Counted from the stretch's first letter, positions 1,796 to 43,869 are shown. The stretch is DNA of 64,000 nt from Tubulanus polymorphus (GCF_964204645.1 NC_134032.1:14062275-14126274), one strand, 5' to 3'. Program-made: numbers and translations. Notes: generated by a model not told the origin, from the sequence alone.

Positions 1796-4239
1796 TACCT
1801 CCACCTCAGCTCGGTGTGAGTCAGTAGTAACTTGTTTTTCCAATAAAGATTAAAATCAGAACCACTGAGAAATCGATATAGAAATAGATTCAACACCTTA
1901 AAATATATACTACCCTCATCCATACTTCATTCCTCTCCTCTTTCTCTCATTCTCTTCCTCTGCCTTTCTCCTTTTCTCCCAGACTCTACCTCTCCCCAGC
2001 CTCTCTCTCCTCTCCCTCTCTTCTCTCTCCCCAGCTGTCCTCAGCCTCTCCCTCTCCCCAGCCTCTCCCCTCCTCTCCTCCCCAGCCTCTCTTCTCTCTC
2101 CCCAGCTGTCCTCAGCCTCTCTCCCTCTCCTCTCCTCAGCCTCTCCCCTCCTCTCCTCCCCAGCCTCTCTTCTCCCCTGCTGTCCCCAGCCTCTATCCAG
2201 CCTCTCTATCCAGCCTCTCTCCTCTCTCCTCAGCCTCTCTCTCCTCTCTCCTCAGCCTCTCTCCTCAGCCTCTCTCTCTCCTCTCTCCCTCTCCTCTCTC
2301 CTCAGCCTCTCTCCTCAGCCTCTCTCTCTCCTCTCTCCTCAGCCTCTCTCTCTCCTCTCTCCTCTCTCCTCAGCCTCTCTCCTAGACCCTCTCCTAGACT
2401 CTCTCCTAGACTCTCCCTGTCTCTATCTCTGCTATACACACAACACTTCATTAACCATAAAAACATCAAAGTAAATTTTTAACTGATGAATATTAATCAG
2501 GTTAATTAATCTTCTTCGTTTTGAAGCCGCTACGAGTTTCTTCTGACCGCATCCTTTCATCCGTTCTCGAACCGTTCATCTCGATAATTAGCGTCGTCGC
2601 TGATACCGTCAGACGGGACGAGAATAATATAAAGACGGCCGCCGTTTCTTTGTATCGCCGTGACGACTATCGCGCAATCGCCGATTGTTGGAAGTTAATA
2701 ATGGTCACAACGCGTCCGGTCAGTTCATCGTTACCATGGCGATTCGATAAAACGGCCGATAGATTGTTAACCGGTTAATTTCTGCGACGTGGATTAAATG
2801 GCGCTTGAAGGTGTATTCGGCGTTTTTAAGGTTTCTCAGAAAATATTAATCAAAAAACTTCCCAGCTTTCAAATATGAGCGAAAAACTAAATGTGGCAAG
2901 TGAGGATCCACCAGGTGTCACTAGTGTTCAGCGGGGTATGTCTCTTTAAACTTATCTAAATTTGGAACCCTATTAAGTAGGTGTAACAACAAATCTAGAA
3001 GATTAGGAATTTTTTGTAAAACGATTGTGAAACTTATCAACCCTCGCCGTCATTTAAGGATCTAGAAACCCACTTCTTTACCATTCAGCCTTCAGGTCCA
3101 TTGTAAATATATAAGTAGCTGTACATAACAACTTCATTTTTCTTTGTATAGTGTATATAACATGTATTCTGTGTACAGCTGTTGTGTTCCTTTTTTCTCT
3201 GTCAAATTTTATTGATTATTCTATATTATTCTATATTTTACGTTATGTTATACAATTGTAAATACTTCTTGATGTCCCTCTGTATACCTCTCGTTGAGGT
3301 GATGAGTGTAAATAAATTTCAATTTCATTTCAATTTCAATTGTATCAACTACTGCGGTTATAGAGGATCCACTTGGCTACGATAGTGTGTAGTACGATAT
3401 CAACTACTGCGGCAAATGAGGATCCACCAGGTGTCGCTAGTATGCAATAGGACAACGATGCTGCTAAGGATATGTTTATAATGGGGCCCCGGTGCACCAG
3501 TTATCCCATCAGGTGGCGCTACTATTTCAGATATATTCGATCAAAATTAAATCGTATTGAATTAACTTCAATCTTTATGAACTCATTGTTCGATCTTAAA
3601 ATTAGACCAATTTTGCAAATTCTGAATAACGCTTAGAGTTCATATTATTTTTACGTGTGATTTGTAAAAGTTGCGAATTTATTTAAGTTTTATTTAAGTT
3701 TTAAGTTAAAGAAGAAATCGAGCATTGACTTTGTACTGTAACCACCTGTTTGTTTCTATTGTTCAAATGTGTTTGTTTTTTTTTTTTTTTTACTCTCTCT
3801 CTCTCTTGTAATTTGTCAGTATCTCTTTCTGTTTTATTTTATCGCCATGTCTGTCTCATGTAATATCTGTAATTACAAGGACGCAATAAATTTGGAATTG
3901 AATTGTACACTAGCGACACCTGGTGGCTTGCTGTAGTAGCGTTACCGCCGGTAATTAATAACGACGTGTTGTGTTTTTGAAGCGTTTGAGTTTTTTTATG
4001 CGTTTTTTAACTGTTTGTGATTAAAGTGAGAGAAAGAGACTCGTGAGACACCGGTTAACGTGACTGTCGGGAATTTACTGTAATCTGTTTAACACCGTCT
4101 GGAAACACGGTAGAAATTACCGTAATGTTGTCTACAACGCGCCTTGACGACTGAAATTCAGTGTCTCCCATTACATTTCAGAGCTGATGTATATTGTAGG
4201 TTTTACCATTTTTAGTGTTATCTAACTTCTGACTTCGCT

Positions 4240-4813
4240 CAGGTAAATCGGGATTAAAATCGAGAACAATTTAGTGTTTCCCAACTAGAGGTCGATACCC
4301 AAATAAGGGTAAACCAGGAATTAAATCTGGAACAATTTAGTGTTACCCAACTAGAGGTTGATACCCTTATTAGGGTAAACCAGGAATTAAATCTGGAACA
4401 ATTTAGTGTTACCCAACTAGAGGTTGATACCCTTATTAGGGTAAACCAGGAATTAAATCTGGAACAATTTAGTGTTACCCAACTAGTGGTTGATACCCTT
4501 ATTAGGGTAAACCAGGGTTTAAATTTGGAACGATTTAGTGTTACCCAACTAGATGTTGATACTCAAATTAGAGTATACCAGGACTTAAATCTGGAACAAT
4601 TTAGTGTTACCCAACTAGAGGTTGATACCCAAATTAGGGTAAACCAGGACTTAAATCTGGAACAATTTAGTGTTACCCAACTAGAGGTTGATACCCAAAT
4701 TAGGGTAAACCAGGACTTAAATCTGGAACAATTTAGTGTTACCCAACTAGAGGTTGATACCCAAATTAGGGTAAACCAGGACTTAAATCTGGAACAATTT
4801 AGTGTTACCTAAC
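4240..4813. repeat. Minisatellite, 57-bp unit, ~10 copies
   Basis: Unit TTAAATCTGGAACAATTTAGTGTTACCCAACTAGAGGTTGATACCC...; explains the 19-aa periodic ORF 4486-4812. Confidence 0.95.
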
Positions 4814-5179
4814 TGGCTAGTTTTTTAGACGTGTGTGAAATTTGATGTTTTGTATTTTAACCGTAGAATATCACTGTTTGCAGTTATGAACCTTCGGTTT
4901 TCGCAACACAAAAAAAAAAGATTCTGATCTTCTTTCTCATAAATATAGGTAGAATACAACGTAATAGAATACAATGTAACAACGTTATATCCCAGCGTAA
5001 TTCACTGATGAAACCTTAGAACAAGTTATTCATTATTTACAACGTTACAGTCTAACGGGAGTGTTTGGTAGTAGTACGCCATCTGGTGGTAGAATTCAAT
5101 ACTTTATATTCTTCTGTTAAGGCAGTTGTAATAGAGGAACATGTTTTAATGAAGGTTTCGTACGTTTTATATTTTTCAG

Positions 5180-8100
5180 AGAAAAACGAAGACGAAATTA
5201 AAATATTTCGACACCGGCGGAAAAAACATAGAAACGGCCGATTTGATAAATATTGATGAGAAGCAAAACGTAAGTCGGATTTCAGGATTTTACTGACAGA
5301 AGGGGTGAAGGGAGTGAGGGGAGGGGTGAGGGAGGCAGGGAGAGGTGAAGGGAGCGATGGGGAGGTCAATTTTAAAAAGTAGTTTGGATCCAGTTCGACG
5401 GTTCGCTTATTGTGGACCTGGATCCAGTGATGTATTTCACGTATTTTTTACCTTTTTTCTGAAAATGTAAAAATTCTGATATCTAAGAAAATGAATTGCA
5501 GCCTTCAACTGTTAATGGTTGAATTTTCCCATTTGTCTTGTGCTAATTATCGCAAACACTTAATAGAGCTCGAAAAAAAACAATGATTTGAAATTTTTTG
5601 ATTTATTAATTGATTTGCGTTTTAGAAAGAAAAATTTAAAAAAAACTTTTCAAAAATATTTCAAACTTTTAAAATGTTTTGTTTTTGAAGGATGCAGCTC
5701 AGGGTAGTGGATACTGGGATACGGAGGACGATACGTTGGATTCGTCGTCGGGAGCTGGACCGGATGATGAGGATGCTGCCGGTGAATCATCTGGAAACGG
5801 TAAGTGAACGTGTATTGATTAATGTTGTTACAGTCTGATAGATGGCGAACTAGTCAACTTTAATTAACATCACCACTGATTGAATCGGCTGGTTTACGTT
5901 TAGTATCAGTCGGTGTATTTGAACTCGGGGGATTAAATCTGCAACTAATCCTAATCCTCGTTTTCAATAAACTCCCTCGTTTTTCACGGTCAAATATATT
6001 TTCTCAAATCTTTTAAATCTAGGGAAAAAACGTTTTTCTCGTGGTGAGTTTAACCCTCCGCTTCCTGGATTCCGGCGAGCCCTTATTTTCAAATCTGGAT
6101 TCTTTAAACAGAGTCTGTTTCTACCTGACCCACCATAGTTAGAAAAAAAGCACATTCCAACCATGACTGGCCGAAGAATTCCTAGGAATTCCAGGAATAA
6201 TCAGGCGGTCATTTCAAATCTGGACTCTGATGAGCTACCTATCCTCCATGGATAAAAGATGAGCACATTCCAACTGCTACCTATCCACCCTGGATAAAAG
6301 ATGAGCACATTCCAACTGCAGAAGTTTGAGCAATTCCCGTACAAACCCCTTCATGACCAGATACCCCTCGAACATACCGGTAGATTAGACACCTTTTGGG
6401 TTTAAAAGCACCAACGGTGGTTTGAATATCTCGTGAGACTCATAGCCCTCCCTTCCTCTCCCCCTCTCTTCTCCCCCTCTCCTTTCTCCTCTCCCCTGGT
6501 TGTTTGTCTGCTCTGAGGGCAGGGTGACGTCTGCGCAGCGATCAATCAATCAAATTGATTGATTAAATTACTGTTAGTAGATTAATGCATTAGAACAATA
6601 GTGTTAGAGATGTAGGATTTATATTGATTCATATAATAAACCCTCGGTACAATACGGACGATCATACACACACTATATATCTCACTAATACTCAGTCAAA
6701 GAAAGTTCACAATTCAGTGATTATTATCGCGATCATGAATCTCGTTCGGTATTTATGTATTTACGAATAGAAAAGGTTCACGTGAGATTTAGAGGTTAAG
6801 AGGTAGCATGAGAGGTCACCTCGAGCGGTCCTCGCTAGAGAGGTTACGTGAGAGGTTCGAATAGGGTCATCTGATAGGTACGAGAGACCGTATGAGAGGC
6901 TAGAGAGGTTACATTCGAGGTCATTCGAGCGCGGTATAAGAGACGATGTTGAGTGGTGACATTAATCAGTATGGTTTACTAAGTGAGTTGTCGCAAACAG
7001 GTTCACACCAATTACTACATGTTGCCGCTGACTACACAGCAACATGGTAAGCCTAATTAGAACTGAGAAAAACATGACAGAGTTACAGAGAGAGGGAGGG
7101 AGGGTAGATGAGAGGTGAGCAGGTTGAGCTTGAGTTGAGAAGGTCAATATGAAAGTTGCTGATCCCCTCTCAGGGTCTATCCGCTATAACCCCTAAAATC
7201 TGCTATATCTCCTCACAGGGTGGGTCTATCTGCTATATCCCCTCACAGGGTGGGTCTATCTGCTATATCCCCTCACAGGGTGGGTCTATCTGCTATATCC
7301 CCTCACAGGGTGGGTCTATCTGCTATATCCCCTCACAGGGTGGGTCTATCTGCTATATCCCCTCACAGGGTGGGTCTATCTGCTATATCCCCTCACAGGG
7401 TGGGTCTATCTGCTATATCCCCTCACAGGGTGGGTCTATCTGCTATATCCCCTCACAGGGTGGGTTTATCAGCTATATCCCCTCACAGGGTGGGTCTATC
7501 TGCTATATCCCCTCACAGGGTGGGTCTATCTGCTATATCCCCTCACAGGGTGGGTCTATCTGCTATATCCCCTCACAGGGTGGGTCTTTCTGCTATATCC
7601 CCTCACAGGGTGGGTCTATCTGCTATATCCCCTCACAGGGTGGGTCTATCTGCTATATCCCCTCACAGGGTGGGTCTATCTGCTATATCCCCTCACAGGG
7701 TGGGTCTATCTGCTATATCCCCTCACAGGGTGGGTCTATCTGCTATATCCCCTCACAGGGTGGGTCTATCTGCTATATCTACAGGGTCTGTCTGCCATGT
7801 CTCATTTCTCAGGGTTTAATATTATGACTGATGTTTAATAATAGTCATTACCTCAGGTGTGATGACTTTTTATTGAGTGGTTGGACTATGGTAGCTAAAG
7901 TGGCTGGCAGCTGAATCAACTACTGGTACATCAAGTAGCTGAAGTGAATGGTGCCACTAGTTGCGGAGGTCATCAGTGCTGCACTCTGGTGGCACTGGTT
8001 CGGATGGAAAAGGGTTAGAAAATCGTCAAATAGTGAATGATGTATATTGTATAATCGCATAGAGATAAATGTTAGTTAGTATTCATAGGATTTATTGGAA

Positions 8101-26375: not shown

Positions 26376-28863
26376 TGGTCTCAGATGCGCTTATAACGAT
26401 AAAATCTGACACCGAAAATAAAAACAGAGTCCGAAACGTTTCGTTGCGCTTATATTCTATTCGACGTTTCGACTGTAAATTATTATTATCCTAATACGAT
26501 GATTTGGTCGTAGATTTATCATTCCTCAAGATAACACAGGATATCATACAGTCGAAACACTGAAGAAAGATTCTATTCGCTCAAGGAAACATTTCAGATA
26601 ATCTTTATATACTATCAGTGTAATTTCATGGAGGACTATTTACTTTAAGAGAATATTCGTGAAGATTAGGATATAGTCGAAATGTCGAATAAACTATATT
26701 TTTGGACTGGAATTTTATCGTCAATTTCGAATTGTATATTGAAGAGTTATTGTATCGATGTAATCTTTATGTGATCTCTGAACGAGGAAGGTATTGTCTG
26801 CATCTATTTATCATGATTTACGATTTCTTATTTTCCATGTGATAAGAACGCCGGGTATTACGTATTTTGTGGCTGCGTGTGACGAGGAGGTGTTTGCGGG
26901 TGGTCAATCCGTATAGGCAAAGGTAAGGAATGAGAAAATTGAAAATTGCATTCACCCAATCTGAGCAACTAACCCCAAATGGGTCCAGGTTCATTCCCTG
27001 GTGAAGCTACTGCACCGTTAGCGAACTAAATCCTACTTTATCGTAATTTTTAATAAAATCAATATATATATATATAGTACTAGTAATTTTACATGTAGTA
27101 AATTTTTACACTAGTAGTACTTGTAATTTTCAATGAAACGTCAGTGCGCCAGGGTTACTTAAACCATCGCTTTTTTAAAATTCTACAATTCTTTACTTAA
27201 AATCAGTCAACTTGATTTCTCACAAGTCAGACACGTATATAGACTACGCAGAAAGCATAACGCGATTTCTCTATGTTGTAGAACGACTATCATTTTCGTG
27301 TCAAATGTCAATCAAAAATCACGTTTTTTTATACGATTCATTCAGTGTTATTCTAAATGACACTGATATCCATATACAGTGTCTCCATTCTCCATTCTCG
27401 GCTGTCAACTTCGAGTCGAACTCTCTTTTCATTCGTATCCGTAATTGTAAAAAAAATCAAAATTGTAGTAGAATAGAATCCAAGTAATAATGCCAGCGGT
27501 AAAAATATGCTTAAGGTAAAAAAATGCCAGAATGAATGAATGAATGAATGAATCGCAGGTCGAAATATACCGTACATAAAAATGAAATGCCAAATTACGT
27601 ACGCGCAATCGCGGTCACCGTGATTATATGTTTTAAACCCCGTATAGAAATGTGAAATCATTAAAAGCAAAATTTATTGTGCAAAATTCAAAAACAGAGG
27701 AGATGACGTTTTCGAACTCACGCGCGAGATCCGCATCCCGTCAGGTGTCAGGAATAGGCTTAAACTGAATAGGGGTATAGTATTATCGGGACGAGTTGTT
27801 TTACTCAAGTTGATTGAGTAGATCTCACCGATCAGTAGATGACCGAATTATAACACGAACTTAGCGAAATTGACTTTTTTCAAAAAGCATTTCTGGAGGG
27901 CGATAGAGTCCATGCTTTTGCTATAGGGATGGGTTGCCTCAGGAGCGGTAAGGCAACCAAAAGCCCCGCCGGCAAGCGAGGATTACACCCAGGTCACACC
28001 TTCCTCGTGAAACTAAACAAACTGCTCAAGTTTTTTCCTGTCGTTGGAGTATTACTAGGTTACTGTAACTGTTCATTGATAACCCCCGGGATAATTACAA
28101 CTACTATATAATTACGCGCATGTGAGTGTCAATAAGATTGATAGTAGCCTAGATAATTACAGCCAGCTAATTGAGATGTAATAACCGATTAATTGATTAA
28201 TTAACCATAGGTGTAATCATGTACTGCATGTTTGTACAGATTCAGAGCTTTATTCCATTGTATTACGGTAGAGTCTGACGCGTGGGAGGCGTCGGAGAAT
28301 GCTCATAATAAACACCATCATCATAAGACTGAGCGTAGCCTGCTACCCACGCTAGTCTATTTGTATTTTAGCTGTTGTTTATTTTATAAACCGGCATTCA
28401 AATTGGCAGCCGGGAAGGATATGAACGCGCAGCCAAGAATTTGAAGAGGTAACGACGCGCCGGCAACTGTCGGCTTGGTAGCTCTACTTGTTTCGTATGC
28501 ATTCGGCTTTCAAATTTGGCGGTCGCAAGGAATCTAGGTACTTGTTCGCGGAAGCCAGCCAATCATAGCACGTTTTTCAACCGGCGAATTTCCTGCTAGA
28601 TGTTGGGAGCCAATCAGCGGCCGTTTGTAAACCACGATCTTATTTTCTAAACTATGATCTTATTTTGACCCTGGACGCGTAAGGAGTCATAGGATTTTTG
28701 GCAGAAAAACACCGTTAAAACTGGGGCTTATATCTAATCGGCTTGATCTATTTATTATTCGTTGTCAATTATCACTGATTTTTATATCGCTGTATTTTCA
28801 TATCGCGCGCTGTTCCGTAGCGAGTTGTGGTATAAATAGCATTTAGCGAGTTAGCCACCAACC

Positions 28864-28876
28864 GCCTCGTTGGCGC
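28864..28876 (+). tRNA. 5' fragment (nt 1-13) of a split elongator tRNA-Met gene
   Basis: GCCTCGTTGGCGC is exactly the part missing from the remnant at 37129-37196; GCCTCGT pairs with its ACGGGGC acceptor strand. TATAAATA lies 33 bp upstream (28831) and CAA just before +1. Confidence 0.8.
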
Positions 28877-31800
28877 TAGCGGGCGCGCGTGAGGCGGTGT
28901 TTTATTTCAGGAAATGAATTGTGGAAACAGCCAATCAAATCCACGGATATCCACAATTCATTTCCTGAAATTTCCTGAAATTGACCAATCGCTGTGCTTG
29001 TTAGCGATGACGTAATTTCGGGATATACCGTTGACGAGCGCCATATTTGATTTTCCGATCGTAAACACACAGCGCAGTTACAGTCACAGAAAGCAGACTA
29101 ATTCGTTCTAGATCATCTGATTAGATTACCCGATTATCACGTAAGTGTATGAATTCAGTACTTCCAACATCCGAGGTTTCATACCCGATTAAATCTTTTA
29201 TCGCAAATGCTTGCTTATGCCAATTTTTTGGTGAAAAACTTCTTACTTTTCACTCGCAAATTCAATCAACTTCAATTTATTACAATTATTTTGGGTTAAG
29301 CCTATCATTCATCATCAAAATGTGAATCGTGAACACTAGAAGAGCGAGAGAGTAGAAGTTTTCACTAGAAGGCATTACGGATTGTTTCATTTTTCCATTC
29401 CGTGATATTTTGTCAATTCTGTTACTGTTAGGCCCTATAAGTCCTTTTTTTATTTAGGCCTACTCCCGTGCGTGGAATAGGTCGATTATCAGCCCAAAAA
29501 TGAAACAGGTCCTTCCTAGCGAATCATTCAGTATTTCCAGCGTCGTAACTGCGTATTAGCCTATGGGTCCGTAAATTCCTTGATGCGCTATGAATCAAGA
29601 AATCTAGAATCCAGGCCAGGGGTAAAATCTAAAATTCTGACTCAGCATTCCCCTTAAAATTCCTATCATCCCCCCTTGAATTATATAAATTAAAAATCAT
29701 CAATTGTCTAAATCTTTTTTCAACTCAATTTGTGAATGCGACCCTCCCTGTACTTATGCATATAGGCCATTGACCAGAAATCTCTCCCTACAACTTGCAA
29801 TTAACTTGAAACAATAGTCACAATGATACCACAGCCACTGGCTGTCTCTATTATTGTTTTGTGTATTCTGTGAAAGGTCAATATAAGTGGGAGCTTATTA
29901 TATCCCTTTATTATGACAGGCATTGTGCTCACAAAGACTTGGTTATCAAAACATAGGCCAATGTGGTTATCAATTCAAATGTTTTGATTTCCAATGACAA
30001 TAAAGCCCTAGCTTGCTAATTTCTCAATTACCTAGTTGATGTAATTACTTTCATATGTAAGATGAAAATTGAAATTATGTTAAACTGGACCCTTAAAATT
30101 TGTTCGATGTTTAATTGATGTTTCTCTTTTTGTTCTAGCATGGAACCAATTTTCCGTCGCCTAAAAAATCGTACGATCGACACGTTTGACACCGATGCCG
30201 CCAAGAACCATAAAAGCACTAGTGGTTGGGCAACTCAGGACCCTGCGGAGAAAGTTTTGGCGGATGCGATGCGCCGGGTTGCCCAGGCCAGAGGAGATCA
30301 GTCAAACCCGAAACATTTGTTAGGCCAGTATACACTTCAGTTTGGTAAGTTTAGGGGTAAGAAATTTCAGTGGATACTCTCTAATGCTCTTGGCTTTGCA
30401 GTAAACCTCTACGTGATGGATGAATGTGAGAAGCAAAAACCACATCCCAAGATAGACCACAAGAACCATGCCGACAACAAGAAAGCCCTCTTCAAATACA
30501 TGAGGCTGTTTCCCGAAGCCAAGGACGCGATTGAGAGGAGGAGAGCTGTCCATCAAGAGCGTGTGAAACCTACGATTTCAAGTAAGTCAAGTTTTCAATA
30601 TACAGTCGGATCGTTTGATATCAGAGTTGTTTTGTGCTTGTTCTATTTATGAAAAATTTTTTATTTTCACAGAAGCTCGTCAGACTCAACCAGCCGGGAG
30701 CCAACCAACTGTGACAACTAGGAGGAGTCGCCCATCTGCTACAACCAGGAGCCAACCAACTGCGACAACTAGGAGTCAACCCAGCTCATCGACTACAACT
30801 GAGAACGTCTCGATGCCGTCTGATGATGATGATGATCTACTGACAAGTGTCATCACTCTTGAAGCGCAGTTATCTGGTAATATAACTTAATTCTAATGAT
30901 ATTTTTATTGTAGATTCAATTGATACATCATGAGATATACATCCTACAAATTTTTGCAGTGTTTTGGACGGATTGTAAAGATTCCATCCAAGTTAACCGC
31001 AGTCCTCCCTTTCGGCCATCCACTCCTAGTAATTGCAGCCATATTGTAACATTTAATCATTTATTTCTCAAAATTTACAGTTTATATCTGGATAAGTTGG
31101 TAAGATTTATGTTGTGTAGGGTTCCTAGAATATGCTTTTATAAATGTGTAGCTATTGTAAAATGGTATTTTCTTCCTATCTATTTTAATGTACCTGTTTC
31201 TTTACAAAAACTGGGTAATCATGCTTTATATGTATGCAGTACTGTCTCATTATTACATAATCCATCTTTATGATATTGGTATATAGTTGCTATAATGGAC
31301 ATTATGAATATGATAACACACACACTCTCTCTGTCTCTCTCTGTCACTAGCAAAATGCAACACTTCTATCCTCTCCTGCTTAATAACTTATTTTTTAAGG
31401 TGATTTCCCTTTTGTAATCTCATTTTTCCAGTGAGTCACTCTTATTCCTCATTTATAGGTATTTAGATGGTAACATTACAGTGATGCGGTTTTCTTTTGT
31501 TCCTTTTGTCTATCATTCTGTTTTTGTTTAATATTTCAGTGAAATTGTACCGGACTTTATGATGATTTAGAATTCTTATGCTATAAACCTCAATCATGAA
31601 TGAGATAGTAAATTCATATTCTATTTTTCTCTATCTAGCCTCTCGGACAACACGGACTACAGCGACTACGACTACACCGACCACGACTACTACTACTACT
31701 ACTACTACACCGACTACGACAACCGCGATCGATAACGACCACCGCTTGCTTTTACCAGAATGGCGTAAAGTTCTGTCCGAATATGAACAGAAGTGGATCA

Positions 31801-34800
31801 CCAAAACCCTCTTCATGAAAACCAAGAGTGGGAGGCTGGAGATGGATTTTAGCCGCGTCAATCAGCTTTGGTGGAATCCTCCACAGCCATTGGTAGTTGC
31901 AGGCCAGGTACCCAACGTCGAGCAGTACTTTGCCCACCGCCTGTTCTTGTGGATGCCTCGACGACTGTGGCAAGTCCAACTTAGATGTCCAGTCGCAACG
32001 TGCCAAGGGAGAGAGTTGACATCAGCAGGATTATACAAGCGGTTGCGGCAGGTACTCGATATCGATTCGCACTACTTCATCGCAACAGAAAGTTTGGAAT
32101 GTCAGAAGTAAGATTGTGTCCATGTTAAAGTGTGACCTGCTGATTACAGGTTGTGATTTTATGAATGATTTTTTTTTTTTGTCTCGTATTTATAGATGCA
32201 AGGCGAAATATGTTGGAACGACTGCTGAGATCATCTCGCAACTAGCCGTCGGTTACCAGCTCCAGTTCCCGTGTATACTGACACAGAAGTACGCGTGCGA
32301 TTATAAGGTTGTGCGACTGCTTCGTCAGAGAGGTCTGGGTAACAGCACTACTCAGATCCAGAAGAAGCTGCGGGAGCAACATGGCGAAGCTTACCTCGAG
32401 CGTGTCTCACAGTACCTCACTGAGTGTGAAGGCTTGTCCAAGGCTATCCGTTCTGGTCTCGTAAAACCGCACGAATTCGCTGACCCACCACAGCCTTTGA
32501 GCATCCCGCAGTTTCGGTGGCTCATGCTTGTGTACGTCAGTGATGTGTTGTCGAGACTGGACGAGGTCAGGGCAGCCATTACGTCTCAGTTTGGTCGAAT
32601 TCTCAAAATTGACTCAACTAAGAAAATAGTCAAGAAGTTGACTGGTCATGCCAAGGGGACCGCGATGTGGTGCACCAATGTAGGGAACGAGCATGGTCAG
32701 GTCCTTATGTCTGTCCTTACTACTGGCGAAGGCTATGGTCTCAGTCAAATGATTGATGGCCTAATCAAAAGGTATGATACTGCTGGTGTGCCTGCCCCTG
32801 AGGTGATATACACTGATCGGGATTGTTGTGGCCACAGCGTACTGAAAACAAACCTAGCCCCTTGGACAGATATCATCATCAGATTGGACGTTTGGCATTT
32901 CATGCGGCGGTTCTCTACAGGGTGTACTACAGATTCACATCGGCTGTATGCGAGTTTTATGAGAGGCCTTAGCCGGTGTATCTTTGAGTGGGACCCTGAG
33001 GATCTTGACCGTCTAAAGAGAGCGAAGCGTGAGGAGCTAGCCCTGAAAGCTATCACTGGTCTTAGTGACCGCCAGTTAGTTGAGCGAATTTCTTCGGCCG
33101 AGTTGGCACGGCACTGTAAACGTACCACACGTGGAACAGATGCTACTGTCCGCCTACTGGGTCAGCTCGTCGCTTCCTTCTCGGGTGACAAAGGGAAAGA
33201 CTCCTTGGGTGTTCCGCTCATAAACACTGAGCGCATGGCGGAGATTTATAAGTCTCAAGCTAAGCATGTTGCCTGCCTGCAGGATCCACCTGGCGTTCAG
33301 TTGTACACACAAACCGGAACGATCAAGAAAGGACAGACGACACTGCCTATCTACAGATGTGCCCGTGGTTCGACGTCATTGGAATCATTCCACCTTCATC
33401 TAAACAGATTCATTCCAGGTAAGATTAAAAATCACTTTCACCATATGAAATCTTCTCTTGTAGCTTTCTCTAACTAATAAGCTAATTTCATGATTTCATA
33501 TTTATAGGTACTGTGGCTGGCGATGTCAGTTTCCAGATGTACCTGGTTGATGGTTTAGCGCGTTGGAATGAGGATCGAGCTATTGCAGCTGTAACTCAAG
33601 ACAAACAGATTTCCTGCTACAGTGGAAAGCTACGCCATCATATCAATGAGCTAAGTCAAACTGTCCTTGGAAAGAAGCTTTTACCAGCATTCCAAGGGCC
33701 ATTGCGTTACACCGGTGAACCTATAGGTATTGATTATCTTTACAGCCAAACAGGAGAGGCACCAGTGTCTAACACTAGGTTGCGTCTAGCCGAGGAGGAA
33801 CGCTTGCTGGACTCTGCTTCTGACCAGGAATTTAGTGACAGCCCTGTTGATGAGCCGCTGCCTCTGTATGATGTGGAAGACTTGACATTAGCTGTGCCTA
33901 CTGATGAGGATAACGACTTCTGTAAGTCACAATGTTTTTAGAAAATTGTTTGAATAATAATTCTATTTCAGTTCTGTTAAGTTCATTCCTGTAATTGATT
34001 CCTCTGATTACTGTTGACTTTGTGATATGCCCTCAGCTGAATCCATTACATTTTGACTAAGGGATAATGGTTTTGTGTATTATTTTTCATTGTAGTTTCT
34101 CCGACTGTGACACCAACTGCACCAGTTCTTCCCGTTGACACCATGTCCGTTGATACTCCGTTGCCGATGGAAACTGAGGAGGTCACTGAGCTTGAACCCG
34201 ATGATGCTGTGCCAGAATTTCGCTTACCGACCCTTGATACTCCAGAGCTGCAGCCCTTTGAACTGTCGAATGTTCCATCTATTGAATCTCCCCTGGGGGA
34301 TTCGGATGAGCATGTAAGTTTTCTATAAAAAAAGGTTTTCGTTCGAGTTGTGTTGATGTTGTTAAAGAATTTAATTTCAAATATCTATTTTATTCAGGAT
34401 TCTTTGGGACCAGACGGTATTGCTGGATTTGGAAAGGTTGATGCTTTGGCTGAGAAACTGGTAAACTTGGATGAGAATTCACTGGCTCTTACAAACAACG
34501 AAGCTCGTGAAATCATTGATTTGTGGCAGAACTTGGACGACTACGACAAGAGGTCCATCATCAAACCACGCCATCAACCAACTCTCAGTCAAGGTAGATT
34601 TCGAGCAACAAAGAAACGTTCTGGCTTGGCTCCTGGAGTTGAAAGTTCACGGAGGTAAGCCTAATCTACTGTATTTTTCATTTCAAAATAAATGTACTAA
34701 TAAGTCGAAATTGCCAATTGAATATTAAATGGCAATATAATCTTTGAGTTCAATTTGACCCTACAATAGAGGTTACATGGGTTAACCTAAATAAACTTTA

Positions 34801-37128
34801 TGTTAATCAAGTATTTATGATAATTTTTAGAGCTTTTCTGGGACCAAATTCGGCACCTGCTCAGTGGCCGACTTGTAATCGCTACGTCGAGACAACCATG
34901 GTGAAGCTCTGTGCGAAGTATCCAGCATCAAAAACGGTTGCAGGAGTGCGAGTTACGCGATGGATCCTTATCTCCCGCGCCTACAAGCACATAAGAGACG
35001 TCGTCGTCGGAAATCCTGTGGTTATGCATCACTCGAACATTCAGCTTCCAGAGTTGAATATGACGACTATAACCCAATGGTAAGTTAACCTTTTATGCCC
35101 CACCTCTTAACCATCTAAATTATTATTAATCATATTGAGATTATGTTCATAAAATGGTCTATTTCTTTTTTCATTTTAGGTGGAATCGACGTTCTAAGAA
35201 GCAAGAGGAAATGGTTCTCAGGCAGGGAATTCAAATCCCGAATCCTCCTTTGGCAAGCCAGCAACCATTGCTTATTGCTTGTCAAAAGCCTTCTGTGCTG
35301 CCGAGAGGATCCTCTGATGATCGCCATACCTTTGTACTTCCTACGAACACTGCTGGAATGGCGAAAATAAAGCGGCGAAGAACAACTCCTTCCGCAACTG
35401 CGACTCTCGCATCAGTAGCTGCGGCAGCAACTAGTACGCGGCCTGCACCGCAGATTCCTCAGAATGTTATTGATTTGTCAGGCGCTCATCAGTCCCTCAA
35501 TACAGATACTACCGCAGATACTACTCGATTGATGGGTTGCTCACAAATCATGACAGGACCTGTTGCGTCTAAGGAGCAGAAAGCTGAAAGTTTGCAGCCA
35601 GCCACTACCCAGCTGATAATTGTTGCACCGCCAAAAGACCAGGCCGTTCTGCCTAAGGTCATCCATTCTGAATCCATGGGAAATATACAGGTTGTTCCTT
35701 ACACAACCCATATGCACAGATTACAAAGGCAGCAGCAATTAGAAGCTGGGGTGAGTCGCAGAAAGTACACTCCACGGACAAAGGTTACTTGTCCTAAGTG
35801 TAAAAAGGAGAGATCGAAGCCCTCGCATCAGCAGTTTTTCGGAAATTGGTACTGTAGTGAAACGTCAACGGTGACTCTGGAAGAGTGGAGACAGCAAATG
35901 CAGGCCAGGGGATACAAGAAGAAGAAGTGAAGCTCGATTAGTGACAGGATTCCAGGACTAGAGATCTATCAACTGTGCGTATCGCGTAGATATGGGTATG
36001 TGTGCCTGGTAAAATCTTTCAGAAATTACTCGATTTTGACATTTTCATGCAGCTATCAACCTGCTGTCTGTACAACCCCTCAGTTTGATGTCCGACAGAC
36101 ATTCGATCACCTCACCATTTGGGAAAAATCGTGGTTTGTCCAGACTTCGCTATTCAAAAAGGTGATCGTCTGAAGGGCTAGGCACAGACAACAGATTGAC
36201 AGCTGCACAAATCTAACTTTGTGACATTTTATGTGAAAATTTGTGAAAAATCTAAGGACCATGTGAAAGAAATATAAAATTGTATCCAGAATTCTCCTTA
36301 GATTGTAACAAGTTTTTGAAAAACCCTTGATGAATTTCAGGCTTGCTTCATCACACTGGACTGATTGTTTATAATTTATTCAGTTTGATGGTTTTGTTTA
36401 TAATTTATTTAGTTTGATGGTTTATTATTTTATAATTGTTTATTAATAATTGGCAGTTTTAATTTTGAGTTTTATTTTTTAAATTTGTATCTTTTATTTG
36501 TTTTATACTAGAATAGGGATTCCAGAAATATTTGGTTGATTTAATGGTAGTTCAACTTTAGAAAATTCACTATAAAATTTGAAATTTGTAGTTTGATTCA
36601 GTGGTAGTTTGACTTAAGAAATTTCACTCTAACATTTAGAATTTGTAGTTTAGTAGTAGAACTTATTTTAAACTAGAAGTCCCTCAAAATTGTAATTTTT
36701 CAATTCAGTGTATATGTCCAAAATTGTAATTTTTCGATTGAGTGTGTATGTGCATTGTGCTTAGAAGCCTGCCTGTTATGCAAATGACAAACTATAAAAT
36801 TTTTAATGCTGCCTACTATGTCAAAAACATGGTAGAAGGTTCCAAGCCCTTAAAAAGCAGAGGAGAGATTTTATAGAAAAAGGTATCATTTATTTAGTTG
36901 TCAGGTCATTTTTCACTGATAAAATGAGCTGAGAATATGAAGATTGGCAGGATGGAAATAAACTAATTAAAACTCATTAATCTACTCCCAGATTCGAACC
37001 ACTGACCCCTCAATAGTACGGGATTCCCTACGCCGAGTGAATGGAAGTTTCAAGTACTGTAGTGGTTTGCATCTAGCAGTACCCCTCCGGCATTCAGGAA
37101 ACGCAACCGAGCCGAGTGAGTAGAAGTT
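28877..37128 (+). mobile_element. Dada-like target-specific DNA transposon (~8.25 kb) inserted in a tRNA-Met gene
   Basis: Flanked by the two parts of one tRNA-Met. Imperfect 7-bp duplication TTGGCGC (28870-28876) / TTAGCGC (37129-37135). No long TIRs. Contains an intact DDE transposase. Junctions are uncertain by up to ~15 bp. Confidence 0.82.
30140..35930 (+). CDS. DDE transposase, Dada-type (DUF6729-like), ~1408 aa, 9 coding exons
   Basis: Exons 30140-30581, 30673-30876, 31639-32107, 32196-33418, 33508-33921, 34096-34313, 34398-34654, 34831-35079, 35180-35930 total 4227 nt, all GT-AG and phase-compatible. Motifs: ILKIDSTKK (D), YTDRDCC (D), LDVWH (DxxH), GSTSLESFH (E). Cys cluster before the core; C-terminal CxxC-H-C. 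Probable non-coding exon ending at 29140. Confidence 0.85.
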
Positions 37129-37196
37129 TTAGCGCAGTTGGTTAGCGCGTCAGTCTCATAATCTGAAGGTCGTGAGTTCGAGTCTCACACGGGGCA
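37129..37196 (+). tRNA. 3' portion (nt 7 onward) of elongator tRNA-Met(CAT), disrupted
   Basis: TTAGCGCAGTTGGTTAGCGCGTCAGTCTCATAATCTGAAGGTCGTGAGTTCGAGTCTCACACGGGGCA. Anticodon CAT at 37157-37159, with the T31:T39 pair typical of eukaryotic elongator Met. T-run terminator at 37217-37233. The 5' acceptor strand is missing. Confidence 0.92.
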
Positions 37197-37679
37197 AATA
37201 GCCCTCGGCGGTGTTCTTTTCTTTTTTTTTTTTCGGAATGATAAAAAATATTTATTTCTTACTTACCCACCAAACTCCGTTTAATTTCAGCGTGGTTTAC
37301 AAATAAACAAGTCTGTAAGAACAACTTGAAGCAGTCAATTGAAGTATTACCTCAAATGTTTCCATCATCTCAGTAACTACGTACCTGACTACATGATATT
37401 ATACTAAAAGGTAATTTATTGCATGCATAAGATTGGTGCTACTATGGCAAAGGCGGGATGACCATGAAATTGAGTGTTAAATGAGACAGAACTTAGTAAA
37501 ATCGAAGGAGTATATAACATGTAAAATAAGATTAGATCACAAATGTAACTTGGTGCCAAACCATTCGATACTTTAAACATCGTGGCATAGATTTGGAAGA
37601 AAAATAGTCCCTGGGAATATTTTGAAATTCGTCAGTTATATCCATGGTTTCTCATTGTTACTATGGTGGTTGTCACCCA

Positions 37680-38022: not shown

Positions 38023-39419
38023 ATGTCCACAAAATTAAAGATGGCCGTACAGGGAACCCCTGTAGCTGTGCGCGTCGCTAGGAGTATCAACGTAACTCAT
38101 CATAGCTCTTCAACCCCGCCGCTAGGGGGCGTCGTAGAACCCCCAAAAACTCCGTTGCCCAGTTTATCGTTGACTACAGTACAACCGGTACCACCGAGGT
38201 CACCCGTACTCATCCGTATGGCGTCAGACGGCCAGTCCAGTGCGCCTGCGCGAACAACTATACCGCCAAATATCAAAATAGCGTCGAAATCGAGTATTAT
38301 CGCAAAACCTATGACGTCATCGACGAACGCAAATATCCCCATCGTGCATATCACTTCGAGCGAACGAACTTTGTCGGAAACTCCCGATTCAACTCCGGAA
38401 TTTTCCGACAATTCGTCGGAAACTAGCGACGATTACAGGCGTTATTTCGGTGATCAATACGGCGGTTCGTTTCACCGCCAGAGGTCGCCATATGACGGTG
38501 AAACGGATTTACATATGTTGAAAGCGATGACGAATCGTTTAAATTTAACGACACAAAGACCGAGTTATATCGAATGGAGAACTCAATACGTCGATAGACC
38601 GCCGTTAATCAGGGCTTTACAAACAATCGGGGTTCAAAATAAACCCTGGACTACCGATCGTAAATATGAAATCAATCAAGCTTTGGACTGGTTACGCAAT
38701 GAACTGGTATGTATAACGAGTTGTAAGACTGGTTACGTGTGTAGTTCGATAATCGGCAGAAAAGGGTTAAAGTTGAGTTATGAAACATACCAATGTGTAG
38801 TAGAATAGCCCGTGCACACAGACGTGGAGAATAGATAATCTAATTAACCCCCCCCCCCCCAATTGACGGTGGTCTTAGGGAGAATCCGAAACATCGAATC
38901 CAGAAAGCTTCGTTTTTAATCTTTTGAATTTGTGGATGGTGTTAATTCGATACCTTTAAATGATGTCGGCAATCTACGTGAAAAGGGTTAATATTGAAAT
39001 TTTACATATTTCTGGGTCTTTCCTGGTAGAACTTTGGTGGAGAGAGAGAGAAAGTGGTCAATAGAAACAAACAGTAAAAATCTCATTCTCAAACGAGTAG
39101 ATGAATTCTGATTCTGAATCATTTACTGATAGATTATCGGTGTTATCTGTTTCAGGAGGACATGCGCAATCAGGACCAGTTACTGGCGCGGCAGTTGGTC
39201 TCGTTACGTCACGACCTGCAGGATTTTAAACTGGAGAAATTCTGCGATGAACACAAGATGTGTATCGAAGATGCACGCGATGAACTCGAAGAAGAAGATG
39301 AACTCAGTGAACTCTGCGATTCGCCTATAACCTTCGGGTCGTTGAGTGCACGCGCGCCGTTAAAATCGATCGGAGTTACCCGGATGAACTTGGAACGGCG
39401 GCGCTTTTCGATCCTCTAA
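38023..39419 (+). CDS. FAM167A: FAM167-family protein, ~315 aa
   Basis: Exons 38023-38706 and 39156-39419 (phase 0). Motifs LNLTTQRPSYIEW, ALDWLRNEL-EDMRNQDQLLARQL, and C-terminal IGVTRMNLERRRFS. AATAAA at ~39844. The 5' UTR exon is probably upstream (donors at ~22901 or ~26200). Confidence 0.88.
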
Positions 39420-40987: not shown

Positions 40988-42556
40988 TTAAAGTCTAGCG
41001 ACTTTTTGGGCGATGTGCTCGACGGCGTAGTGAAACCATTCCTCGAATGAAATAGTGCCGTCGTTGTTTTTGTCCATCTTGCTGAACTGTGTTTTCCTGG
41101 CTGCAATGCGTTCCTGGTCGGTTTTGTACATGACCGAGGATTGCGGGGCTAAACCGTATCGTCTGGGCATAGCGGCGGCAATCTCGATCATGCTGTCAAA
41201 CTCTTTCACGTTGACGGCTCCGTCGTGGTCGCGATCGGCTTGTTGGAACACCTTCATCAAGTAGAAATACAATTCTCGATGCTCAACGTTCTTTTGGACG
41301 ACGGCTTTCTTGCAGAAGGCGATGAACTCGTCCTTGGGACCGTCGACCATGATGTGCGGTTTGACGGCGCTGATTTTACCCATGATGTGAGTCATGGCGT
41401 AGCTGATCCAGCTATCCAGACTGATCTGTCCGGTTCGTTTGGTGTCGATCTTGGCGAACAGTTCTTTGCGGGCTTTCAGACGATCTTCGATGGTCGGATA
41501 GGATTGCTCGTTAGTGGGGGCCAGGCCGTATCGGCGTGGTAGCTCGGCAGCAGCGTCGATCATGCGATCGAATTCGTCCACGTTAACGGTACCGGTGTAG
41601 TTGATATCCGCGTCGGTGAAACAGCGGACCAGGAACGCGTGCAACTCGATTCGCTCGTTCGAATCGCGGTGTTTACACGCTTGGCTTATGAAATGTAGGA
41701 ACTCTTCTTTCGGCATGTCCAACGATGACGACATATCTACGAAAATAGAAACGTAATACAAAAATTAGCGCCCCCTGGTGATGAAAATAAGTGAGCGGGA
41801 ACCATGTTTTGCCTAATCGCGTATCTTACCGGCTATCTTCCTGGCGATGTGACTAACGGCGTAGTTCAGCCATTCGTGGAACGATACGGTTCCGTCACCA
41901 TTCTTATCCATTCTGGCGAACTGAACTTTTCGTGCGGCCAGTCTGTCGGCTTCGGTCTTGTACATGAGTTCCGATTTCGGGGCCAGGCCGTATTTACGAG
42001 GCATAGCGGCGGCGATTTCGATCATCTTATCGAATTCGGCAATATTGACGGCGCCGTCGTGGTCGCGATCGGCCTGTTGGAAAACCTTCAACAAATAGAA
42101 ATACAACTCTTTGTGTTCGGTGGTTCCTTTTTGGACGGCCTTCTTGATGAATGACAAAAACTCTGACTTGGATCCGTCGACGAGGATATGTGGTTTCAAG
42201 CCGCGGACTTTCCCGCTGATGTGCTTCATGGCGAAGTGTACCCAGGCCTCCAGACTGATTCTACCGGTCTTGGCCGTATCGATTTCAGCGAATAGGACTT
42301 TACGAGCTCGGATACGGTGTTGCGGTGTTGGGTATGACTGTTCGTTGGTTGGCGCGAACCCGTGACGTCTGGGTAAGGCAGCAGCCTTGTCGATCATCGT
42401 GTCGAATTCGTCGAAAGTAACGGTGCCGGAGCAGTCCTTATCGGCGTCCGTGAAACATCGAACCAAGAAGTTGTACATGACGATTCCTTCATCGGATTGT
42501 GGATCCTCGCTTGCCATTCTCGAGGCGTGCACGAATTCTTCTTTTGTCATCTCCAT
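40988..42556 (-). CDS. Multi-EF-hand calcium-binding protein (four two-EF-hand repeats, ~491 aa)
   Basis: Coding exons 42556-41830 and 41736-40988 are joined in frame by a 93-nt GT-AG intron. EF loops include DKDCSGTVTFDE, DRDHDGAVNIAE, DKNGDGTVSFHE and DKNNDGTISFEE. The linker AAAxPRRyGxAP repeats four times. Non-coding exon 1 ends at 43788; acceptor at 42588. Confidence 0.85.
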
Positions 42557-43869
42557 GGCGACTAATTGTTGTCTGTGATTGAAACAGTCTGCGATAGAAA
42601 AAAATACGATAGACATTAAAAATGAGAAATTTTCTGAAAGGGTCACTTTAACCTTTTCACCTCGACCCGAGCGCAGGGGTCATCAATCTGAAATTGTTGA
42701 TCGTAAACAACTTTATTGAACTATTAACGCCCGTTTCCTTGAATGGAAAAAAATAATTTGGGTCGGCGTGCAATGGACTGGTTAACGGCTAGACGGGTTC
42801 ACGGCTGAACAAAGCTCGCGAACCGTGACAAAATCTGACGTCGTCAGATTTTGTCCGCAAACAGTTCAGCCGAGATCCTGGATATAGGGGCGTGGCGTCG
42901 GGAGACAGTGCCGGCTCGGGGATAGTTTACTATTGACAATATCGATCGATAAAAGACGATTAATTTTATATTTTTGAAAATTGACGACCAACAAATCGGA
43001 ACGAACGTCACGCTGTAAAGCGACAGCAGCTATTTGTTACAACTTAAAAAGAAGTTTTAACATAACTTCTCACATATCGCGATAAACTGTGCGCTATTTG
43101 TTACAACTTAAGGAGAAGTTTTAGTATAATTAATTGGTAATATAATGCGATAGAAGCTACTCATTTTTCAAATTTAGGAGAAATTCTAACATCTCTGGTT
43201 AAAGTGGAAATTAACAACTGATATATATATGGAGCGAGATTTCGAAATGGGAATTGATAATAAGAAAAAAAAAATTCTGAAAATGTTGACATTAGGAGAT
43301 TTTTTTTCACATTTTGAAAGCTACTTTGCGTGTAGGTATCCTAACCATTCCCGTTAAAAAGAGACTAATTAAAATTCTACGGTTAAGCAGTAAGTAACCG
43401 CGCGTTACGGTGGCAGACTGATTGAAGGCGAAATGACTTGCACTTGCAAAATGAAAGCATCGTTTTTGCATGAAAGCATCGTTTTTGCTAGGAAAAAATC
43501 AAGAAACCTTTATTCAAGTTGCTGGAACTATAACTTGTTTAGAATTATCAGCTGGAACATTATACTTAAGAACCAGTGACAATTGTGTTTAAACTCGACC
43601 ATCCAACTATTGTACTTGGATTTTCGATTTCAAAATTAAACCCCCTGATTTGTTCCCGGCAGATGTGACTGCTTGGGTTTGTGAGAGGACTCGGCAAAAC
43701 GGCGATCATATCAACCAATCGAATAAATAAATCCCCTATTTCGAGATCAATAAACTAAAGATAAAAGAATTTGAAACGAATACTCACCGATAAATTCGGA
43801 CAGGCTACAGCTTACTGGACGGTTAGTCAGTCTGGCTCGGAATGGTTAAAACACTACTGCAACAGCGCG

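Follow-up and report, generated by a model that had tools for sequence, protein, structure and literature searches.

A tRNA-Met gene divided by a Dada transposon

The 64-kb window analyzed here (the whole stretch of 64,000 nucleotides from Tubulanus polymorphus, GCF_964204645.1 NC_134032.1:14062275-14126274; coordinates without a prefix are counted from its first letter) contains two pieces of a tRNA-Met gene that lie 8.25 kb apart, which raises the question of what divided the gene and what directed the intervening DNA to this site. We conclude with high confidence that the gene was split by an intact, autonomous Dada transposon of the group that targets the A box of tRNA genes, that this element is directed by a short motif and has been mobile recently, and that the hexamers at its ends may be carried over from donor sites as flaps. 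To our knowledge, no DNA transposons other than Dada elements home to fixed sites in small-RNA genes, and the use of Dada elements as safe-harbour vectors for gene delivery has been proposed. What this locus contributes is the youth of the element, junctions that are informative about the mechanism of insertion, and a previously unreported candidate ribozyme module.

No tRNA gene was detected by ARAGORN in the intact window. When positions 28864-28876 were joined to 37136-37196, a 74-nt tRNA-Met(CAT) with a complete acceptor stem was reported, and, with 28877-37135 removed, the call was independent of which of the two flanking hexamers was retained. The left flank ends in GCCTCGT-TGGCGC (28864-28876), in which GCCTCGT (28864-28870, + strand) is the 5′ acceptor strand, nt 1-7 of the tRNA, and matches nt 1-7 of most intact tRNA-Met paralogs, while TGGCGC (28871-28876, +) occupies nt 8-13. 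The right flank begins with TAGCGC-AGTTGG, that is, with a second version of nt 8-13 (37130-37135, +) followed by nt 14-74 through position 37196 (37136-37196, +), which supply the rest of the D arm, the CAT anticodon arm, the T arm, and the 3′ acceptor strand. The 3′ part also produced an Rfam match (37129-37189, 48.8 bits) starting at model position 7. The gene, an elongator tRNA-Met(CAT), is interrupted by the Dada element between nt 1-7 and nt 14-74, and each side bears one hexamer; the break point is the boundary of the acceptor stem and D arm, within the A box. The transcription signals are distributed accordingly: a TATA-like box, TATAAATA, read from the sequence at 28831-28838 (+), remains on the left approximately 30 nt 5′ of the tRNA start, and the T-run terminator of RNA polymerase III (Pol III) remains on the right (37217-37233, +; T4 at 37217-37220 and T12 at 37222-37233).

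Both the split gene and the separation of its upstream TATA from its terminator agree with the original prediction, which a model had made from the sequence of the window. That prediction had also described the boundary repeat as TT(G/A)GCGC. The hexamer part of the repeat stands, with a length of 6 bp, as other copies of the element show, but the seventh shared T is coincidental because the element itself terminates in TTT.

Element architecture and transposase gene

The element (28877-37129, +) is 8,253 bp long and extends from TAGCGGGCGCGC to GAGTAGAAGTTT, termini that were determined from the 10 5′ ends and 7 3′ ends of family copies found in the genome (268 Mb in 77 contigs). No inverted repeat joining the two element ends was found, and the claim that the insert has no long terminal inverted repeats (TIRs) is therefore upheld. 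A repeat search identified a perfect 22-nt inverted repeat with a 24-nt loop located 28 nt inside the 5′ end (28904-28971, no strand assigned). The loop includes a CCAAT, and a second CCAAT and TGACGTAA are present further downstream; the region is a possible promoter or transposase-binding candidate. The same search revealed subterminal direct repeats, CGAGTGA(A/G)T(A/G)GAAGTTT(C/T), at 37034-37051 and 37113-37130 (+; family D5), with a third copy at 29345-29362.

The exons of the transposase gene, all on the + strand, were searched one by one rather than as a joined full-length protein, and the limits of the exon blocks, obtained by tblastn with long homologs (P0121, P0124, P0126, and P0129), are approximate. 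The first block begins with an ATG at 30140 (30140-30616). The next mapped block (31731-32107) encodes the first half of DUF6729 and the C-x4-C half of an N-terminal zinc finger (RCPVATC, 31983-32009), and it is followed by an 89-nt GT..AG intron (32108-32196), the splicing of which, LECQK|CKAK, creates the C-x2-C half of the CCCC finger (compare the column LEC--RSCKK of Dada-U6_DR). The spacing of this finger is one residue shorter than in Dada-U6_DR. The catalytic exon (32197-33441) contains the residues of the active site, namely D in ILKIDSTKK (32599-32625), D in IYTDRDCC (32806-32829), DxxH in RLDVWHF (32881-32901), and E in GSTSLESFH (33367-33393). Downstream lie a block that extends the published alignment (33486-33881; FQMYL..G...WNE.R), two further tblastn blocks (34392-34655 and 34823-35080), and the last block (35181-35930), which carries the stop codon and a C-terminal CCHC finger of the form C-x2-C-x8-H-x8-C (35790-35855; CPKC-x8-H-x8-C). 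All mapped blocks are open, and the gene comprises at least seven to eight exons. Before splicing, Pfam DUF6729 is divided between two adjacent + strand open reading frames (ORFs; E 2e-42 and 2e-36), and the ORF pieces on this strand contain the DSTKK, DRDCC, DVWH, and LESFH motifs, so that the D-D-DxxH-E transposase predicted earlier is present.

The 453-aa catalytic ORF retrieved 796 homologs with 45-64% identity from ray-finned fish, bivalves, a gastropod, a shrimp, a sea urchin, amphioxus, a tube worm, and an anemone, all of them annotated as uncharacterised or DUF6729; a second search, against cluster representatives, yielded 2,513 matches, many of 1,000-1,340 aa. A search of the literature found no paper mentioning DUF6729. 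Compared at the level of motifs with the published Dada alignment (Dataset S1 of Kojima & Jurka 2013, PMC3706591), the window ORF shares identical runs of 7-10 residues (RLDVWHFMRRF, TTDSH.LY, IFEW.D, QDPPGVQLY, and RCARGSTSLESFHLHLNRF.PG). The ILK.DSTKK and DRDCC blocks are also common to the window ORF and Dada-U6_DR and others, and RCARGSTSLE occurs in 11 sequences of that data set. These long exact motifs support the Dada-like identity proposed from the sequence. The superfamily definition used here includes the absence of TIRs, a length of 4.7-11 kb, an intron-containing gene, a target site duplication (TSD) of 6-7 bp, CCCC and CCHC fingers, DDE plus DxxH, and insertion at a constant position within multicopy small-RNA genes. 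Judged by its catalytic triad, DxxH motif, two zinc fingers, lack of TIRs, length, introns, 6-bp TSD, and position at tRNA nt 8-13, the insert is a Dada element.

Genomic copies and recent activity

The window copy (located on C8 and used here as the 8,253-bp reference) is accompanied by two copies arranged head to tail in a tRNA-Lys(CTT) gene approximately 0.68 Mb away on C8, neither of which differs from the window copy at any of the 8,253 bp (100% identity). A further full copy (C6:20185693-20193963; 99.98%) has one internal difference and is flanked at each end by TGGCGC, in unique sequence. Three full copies thus have the same 8,253-bp sequence, and 1 base separates them from a fourth: the family is very young, has transposed very recently, and is possibly still active.

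The remaining copies are more divergent or incomplete. The C11 copy (99.4%) lies in a 5S rRNA array; the C19 copy ends at element position 5258 and provides a left flank only; and two partial C9 copies, which face each other as a rearranged inverted pair (C9:12171310-12180862), likewise provide left flanks only. Two C10 copies (C10:8819206-8826063 and C10:4164970-4169131), of which C10a is at a unique site and C10b in a tRNA-derived repeat, have a common internal deletion, 2991..7042. Since the same deletion is present at two different sites, these copies represent a nonautonomous derivative that was itself mobilized.

The flank of the C6 copy drew separate attention. A U1 small nuclear RNA gene was considered as its target because of the left flank, ACTTACCTGG, and was rejected: neither flank produced an Rfam match, the right flank is single-copy, and an antisense splice donor, CAGGTAAGT, is the better interpretation. 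On the other strand the left flank reads ...GCGCCAG|GTAAGT, a consensus splice donor, and the C6 copy may interrupt the exon end of a minus-strand gene.

Target sites and specificity

In all copies, the flanks diverge right up to the same termini. The tRNA pieces in the window are therefore target DNA and not cargo of the element, and the possibility that other copies would carry both tRNA fragments internally, which had been named as grounds for abandoning the prediction, is not borne out. The tandem pair has the structure GCCCGGC-TAGCTC, element, TAGCTC, element, TGGCGC-AGTCGG and occupies the same tRNA position in tRNA-Lys(CTT) as the window copy does in tRNA-Met. The C11 copy is inserted within one unit of the 5S rRNA array, antisense to the 5S gene and directly after ATTCCCAGGCGGTCACC. 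The C10b site, in a tRNA-derived repeat, has the hexamer TGGCCG, and the C6 and C10a sites are unique, non-RNA sequences. Common to the sites is a motif located 3′ of the hexamer, A(A/G)GT...TAG (for example, AGTTGGTTAG, AGTCGGTAG, AAGTTAG, AAGTACTAAC, and AGTGGTTAG), in agreement with the view, already published, that it is chiefly the DNA downstream of the hexamer that the transposase reads (PMC8869645). Judging from these sites, the family recognizes a short motif, a T(A/G)GC(G/T)C-like hexamer plus A(A/G)GT...TAG, rather than one gene, and this would account for landings in tRNA-Lys, 5S rRNA, a tRNA-derived repeat, and occasionally unique DNA. Insertion specificity is relaxed, with at least two copies at unique non-RNA sites.

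The original prediction was a tRNA-Met-specific Dada family with an undescribed class of target and, hence, a new site-specific integrase. The window copy does lie exactly inside a tRNA-Met gene. A search of the genome with both element ends, by which further copies at the same tRNA-Met junction were expected, found only the window copy in tRNA-Met; this gene accounts for just 1 of approximately 7 informative insertions, and the remaining 10 tRNA-Met copies of the genome are intact at this site. The sister copies, 99.4-100% identical, instead occupy tRNA-Lys(CTT), 5S rRNA, a tRNA-derived repeat, and unique DNA. Nor is the target unlike those already described, given that Kojima 2022 (PMC8869645) reported insertion at nt 8-13 with TGGCGC or TAGCTC and listed Met among the tRNAs hit. 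A dedicated tRNA-Met family is accordingly almost certainly not the explanation, and recognition of a short motif is retained.

The same position is used by a related Dada family, 61% identical, that was found within tRNA arrays of another assembly (L072:8419-8431 and 19532-19551; L073:19544-19550). One copy of that family splits a tRNA-Lys(CTT) gene at nt 8-13, where the left hexamer is the native TAGCTC and the right one a foreign TGGCGC, the one-sided replacement also seen in the present genome; the right junction of another copy corresponds to nt 8-13 of tRNA-Arg(ACG) in an array that is without one Arg gene there.

Relationship to described Dada families

Five Dada lineages of fish insert at tRNA nt 8-13, in the A box, with TGGCGC or TAGCTC (PMC8869645), and Perkinsus Dada families insert at the same position (PMC3706591, PMC8869645). 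Met is among the tRNAs hit by Dada-tR and Dada-tN (PMC8869645). For some families, several tRNA types are hit and relaxed specificity has been described, as have tandem copies with a single duplication between them (PMC3706591, PMC8869645). The element in the window is thus of a known kind, a member of the A-box-targeting Dada group, and does not define a new target class.

A close likeness is to the tRNA-targeting elements of fish (PMC8869645), with which the present family shares insertion at nt 8-13, a 6-bp TGGCGC/TAGCTC duplication followed by AA or AG, targets that include Met and Lys, replacement of the hexamer sometimes on one side only, a multi-exon gene, and the lack of TIRs. Unlike them, it resides in an invertebrate host, a single family is found on both TGGCGC- and TAGCTC-type sites plus 5S, and it carries a twister motif (see below). 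Dada-tIA, Dada-tIB, and Dada-tY_PMar, together with Dada-U6 and Dada-U1 (PMC3706591), have the same DDE plus DxxH and the same CCCC and CCHC fingers; Dada-U6_DR shares the 7-10 identical-residue runs with the window ORF, Perkinsus marinus Dada has the TAGCTC A-box target, and Dada-U1 likewise occurs as tandem copies separated by a single duplication. In contrast, the Perkinsus marinus elements have no introns and were each reported to be specific to one tRNA, whereas Dada-U6 and Dada-U1 possess subterminal inverted repeats that mirror the target, in place of which only subterminal direct repeats and a 5′ palindrome are found here. The C11 insertion after ATTCCCAGGCGGTCACC overlaps the target of fish Dada-5S, ATTCCCAGGCGGTC (Kojima 2022, PMC8869645); Dada-5S, however, is a lineage dedicated to 5S, while a single 5S event was found here and the other copies of the family are at tRNA-type sites.

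Flanking hexamers and a model for their origin

TGGCGC adjoins or lies near the 5′ end of the element in 8/10 copies, regardless of the flank. Perfect 6-bp repeats surround the first tandem copy (TAGCTC) and the C6 copy (TGGCGC), and the repeat around the window copy has 1 mismatch. Among the native tRNA-Met genes, TAGCGC is present in 3 and TGGCGC in 8; the closest paralog of the window gene, which shares its body and 3′ trailer, has TAGCGC. We take the right hexamer of the window copy as native; the left one probably came along from the donor site. Because TAGCTC is found in all 10 intact tRNA-Lys(CTT) genes, the TGGCGC that ends the tandem pair on the right is foreign. One-sided hexamer replacement occurs in both polarities among the young copies. 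For Dada-tA (GCGCAA) and Dada-tY (TGGCGG), foreign hexamers in the place of the duplicated one have been described, sometimes on one side and "by an unknown mechanism" (PMC3706591, PMC8869645), and the single mismatch at the window copy fits this pattern.

Unequal hexamers could also arise without any contribution from the donor if a later point mutation, or gene conversion among the tRNA paralogs, altered an ordinary 6-bp duplication. In favor of this explanation, the window hexamers differ by a single base, and both versions are found in native tRNA-Met genes. Against it, the window element has 0 substitutions in 8,253 bp compared with two sister copies, so that a change within the 12 flanking bases is unlikely. 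In the tandem pair the difference between TGGCGC and the native TAGCTC (10/10) is two bases, foreign TGGCGC is also found in the tRNA-Lys gene of another species and beside the 5′ end in the 5S gene and at unique sites, and replacement is documented for Dada-tA and Dada-tY. Later mutation or conversion is therefore very unlikely, and carry-over from the donor is the preferred account.

From the pattern of junctions we infer the following mechanism. The non-transferred strand would be cut 6 nt beyond each end of the element, and the excised element would carry the donor hexamers as 6-nt 5′ flaps. After strand transfer with a 6-bp stagger, a flap could be ligated opposite the single-stranded target hexamer, yielding a heteroduplex that the first round of replication would resolve into two daughters: in one, the donor hexamer would be on the left and the target hexamer on the right, and the other would have the reverse arrangement. 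The donor RNA gene is predicted to be resealed seamlessly. When tRNA-Lys genes with TGGCGC were sought as excision footprints, 0/10 were found. The donor-left/target-right class is fitted by the window, C10a, and C10b copies and probably by the C11 copy, though its left junction is irregular; the reverse class is fitted by the second tandem copy and by the tRNA-Lys copy of the other species. The first tandem copy fits a local hop from a donor with TAGCTC as its left hexamer. The junctions thereby offer a concrete model for the "unknown mechanism" by which target duplications are replaced, as described in the 2013 and 2022 papers.

The piggyBac transposon excises with TTAA 5′ overhangs and Tn7 with 3-nt overhangs, and such overhangs can pair at the target gap. 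The likeness to the flap model is one of proposed logic only, in that overhangs derive from the donor flank: the transposases are unrelated to that of Dada, and the proposed Dada overhang would span 6 nt and might not match the target.

A circular intermediate that, like attP with attB, recombines with the target through a 6-bp core common to both was considered in place of a staggered cut-and-paste reaction with flaps. In its favor, all junctions can be described as flank-[core]-element, the core being of either type on either side, and the head-to-tail pair is separated by exactly one core. The encoded protein, though, is a DDE/DxxH transposase related to those of hAT, MuDR, and P elements rather than a recombinase of the tyrosine or serine type; most recombinases that depend on a core would be blocked by differences at 1-2 of its 6 positions; and insertions at the unrelated hexamers CCATCC and CTGACC also occur. 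We regard recombination of a circle as unlikely and favor cut-and-paste transposition with donor-derived flaps.

Several points weigh against this reading of the locus. No empty allele was seen: three public runs, all contig-type and from one study, were available for the locus, and no flank-to-flank contig is listed in them. One contig spans 28167-28900 without differences but extends only 24 nt into the element, compared with a 31-nt minimum for a bridging record, and depth over the element in the contig runs is approximately 5-10x that of the flank, which is uninformative on polymorphism. The preinsertion sequence was consequently deduced from paralogs. Because TAGCGC and TGGCGC are both native to tRNA-Met genes, the foreign hexamer in the window is identified from the closest paralog and from the pattern that the other copies show. 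Irregular older junctions do not fit a clean flap model, including C-TGGCGC-TCC at C11, extra TAGC or GCGC at C10 and C9, and a doubled TGGCGC at C9. Two-sided replacement, which is often seen (PMC8869645), requires mismatch repair in addition to flaps. Finally, the comparison with published Dada proteins is one of motifs.

Two observations concern the distribution of tRNA-Met hexamers in the genome. A cluster of tRNA-Met(CAT) genes at C8:15.21-15.37 Mb has G9 (TGGCGC), with one truncated member (L039), and A9 (TAGCGC) is found in three tRNA-Met copies outside this cluster and in the right hexamer of the window gene.

A candidate Twister-P1 ribozyme in the 3′ noncoding region

A match to the Twister-P1 ribozyme (Rfam RF03160; 53.6 bits, E 5.5e-10) is located at 36800-36868 (+), in the 3′ noncoding part of the element and on the transposase strand. 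The genome search scored the best candidates only, and, among the matches listed, 11/11 hits belong to this family or lie 2-4 kb 3′ of diverged Dada-like loci on the same strand. There are four such diverged transposase loci (approximately 40-60% identity), with twister positions at C11:4461775(-), C9:11298794(-), C11:4483121(+), and C11:4470667(-), and they were examined as 3-kb loci around the twister hits. Twister copies of sister families score 67.2, 60.8, and 54.4 bits with RF03160. Beyond this genome, the motif was found 3′ of a Dada gene in the scallop Argopecten irradians (66.9 bits, model R1) and in one further assembly (67 bits); at these loci it occupies L064:17306-17397 and L074:17059-17151. 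Within the genome, a query made of the element 3′ end, containing the twister, matched Dada copies only.

In six sequences the core (UAA.GC.GCC, GGUCCCAAGCCC, and AAAGC.GAGG) is nearly invariant and the hairpin is variable; under a structure consistent with Rfam, 91.5% of cells are paired, compared with 40-52% in slid controls; and 10 pairs are changed on both sides, with one pseudoknot pair present as CG in three sequences and UA in three. From the stop codon (35930) to the end of the element, the + strand has a single AATAAA, at 36957, approximately 90 nt 3′ of the twister, so that cleavage would remove the poly(A) tail or release an RNA from the 3′ end of the element.

The match could instead be due to chance or to an unrelated small nested repeat that plays no role in Dada biology. 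In favor of this, the score in the window is below the gathering score (67.2), the minimum-free-energy z-score is only -1.8, and the tRNA-like pieces that adjoin the motif could indicate a nested unit resembling a short interspersed nuclear element (SINE). Several Dada loci of other species are without the motif: with model R1, it was detected in 0/9 other loci (Gigantopelta, Lytechinus, Branchiostoma, Carassius, Gadus, L063, L071, L072, and L073), which is weak evidence as some of these copies may be truncated or domesticated. A chance match is nonetheless difficult to reconcile with the recurrence of the motif on the same strand 3′ of four diverged Dada loci and of Dada genes in the scallop and one more assembly, with the exclusive recovery of Dada copies by the 3′-end query, or with the excess pairing, the two-sided changes, and the exchanged pseudoknot pair. 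Chance or a passenger repeat is thus rather unlikely.

Tentatively, and with a likelihood that we place somewhat below even, the twister is a working, conserved part of a Dada clade that is located in the pre-mRNA or 3′ untranslated region and cuts the transposase transcript. Cleavage would throttle expression of the transposase or release a 3′ RNA consisting of the ribozyme and the last ~260 nt of the element. This end RNA would be able to extend into the adjoining target gene, and there is a very slim chance that it participates in choosing the target or in homing.

The known mobile-element context of twister is that of non-LTR retrotransposons (LTR, long terminal repeat) of Schistosoma mansoni, which carry twister and twister-variant ribozymes (PMC8501958). 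As in the Dada element, a twister-class motif is embedded in and carried by a mobile element; there, however, the ribozyme resides in a retrotransposon and processes an RNA intermediate, whereas the Dada motif resides 3′ of the transposase ORF in a DNA transposon of the cut-and-paste type. Our literature search found no paper linking twister with Dada or any DNA transposon. If the twister is active, it would broaden the range of self-cleaving ribozymes, from retroelements to include a DNA transposon, would provide a second defined biological context for twister, and would be the first example of a self-cleaving ribozyme associated with a cut-and-paste DNA transposon of eukaryotes.

Additional features of the element and its surroundings

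The stretch between the twister and the 3′ end (36869-37129 in the window; also L053 and L054) contains strings resembling a T arm or B box in all families. In this genome the strings are antisense (GGGATTCGAA, and AGATTCGAACC in the window), and at L074:17193-17263 a degenerate, sense tRNA-like unit begins 42 nt after the twister. The strings could be a mimic of the target that is bound by the transposase or a nested SINE-like piece. On C11, a 40-kb cluster (C11:4446000-4485000) comprises degenerate Dada-like transposase fragments of other families (32-60% identity), and three twister hits are located inside it.

At the left junction, pairing of the tRNA 5′ fragment CCGCCTC with GAGGCGG at the 5′ end of the element (28861-28903) was considered and dismissed as a coincidence; the tRNA-Lys copy has no such pairing. 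GAGGCGG is followed by TTTTATTT, and folding and termination of a short Pol III transcript are conceivable there; we likewise take this as coincidental.

Approximately 2 kb 3′ of the insertion and on the same strand, an exon of FAM167 is present at 39162-39419 (+; Pfam E 4e-28). The insertion may be located in a FAM167 5′ intron, as the original prediction proposed, or may lie upstream of that gene. Two neighboring ORFs on the minus strand, 40988-41761 (-) and 41813-42646 (-), each encode EF-hand pairs and resemble a tandem duplicate.

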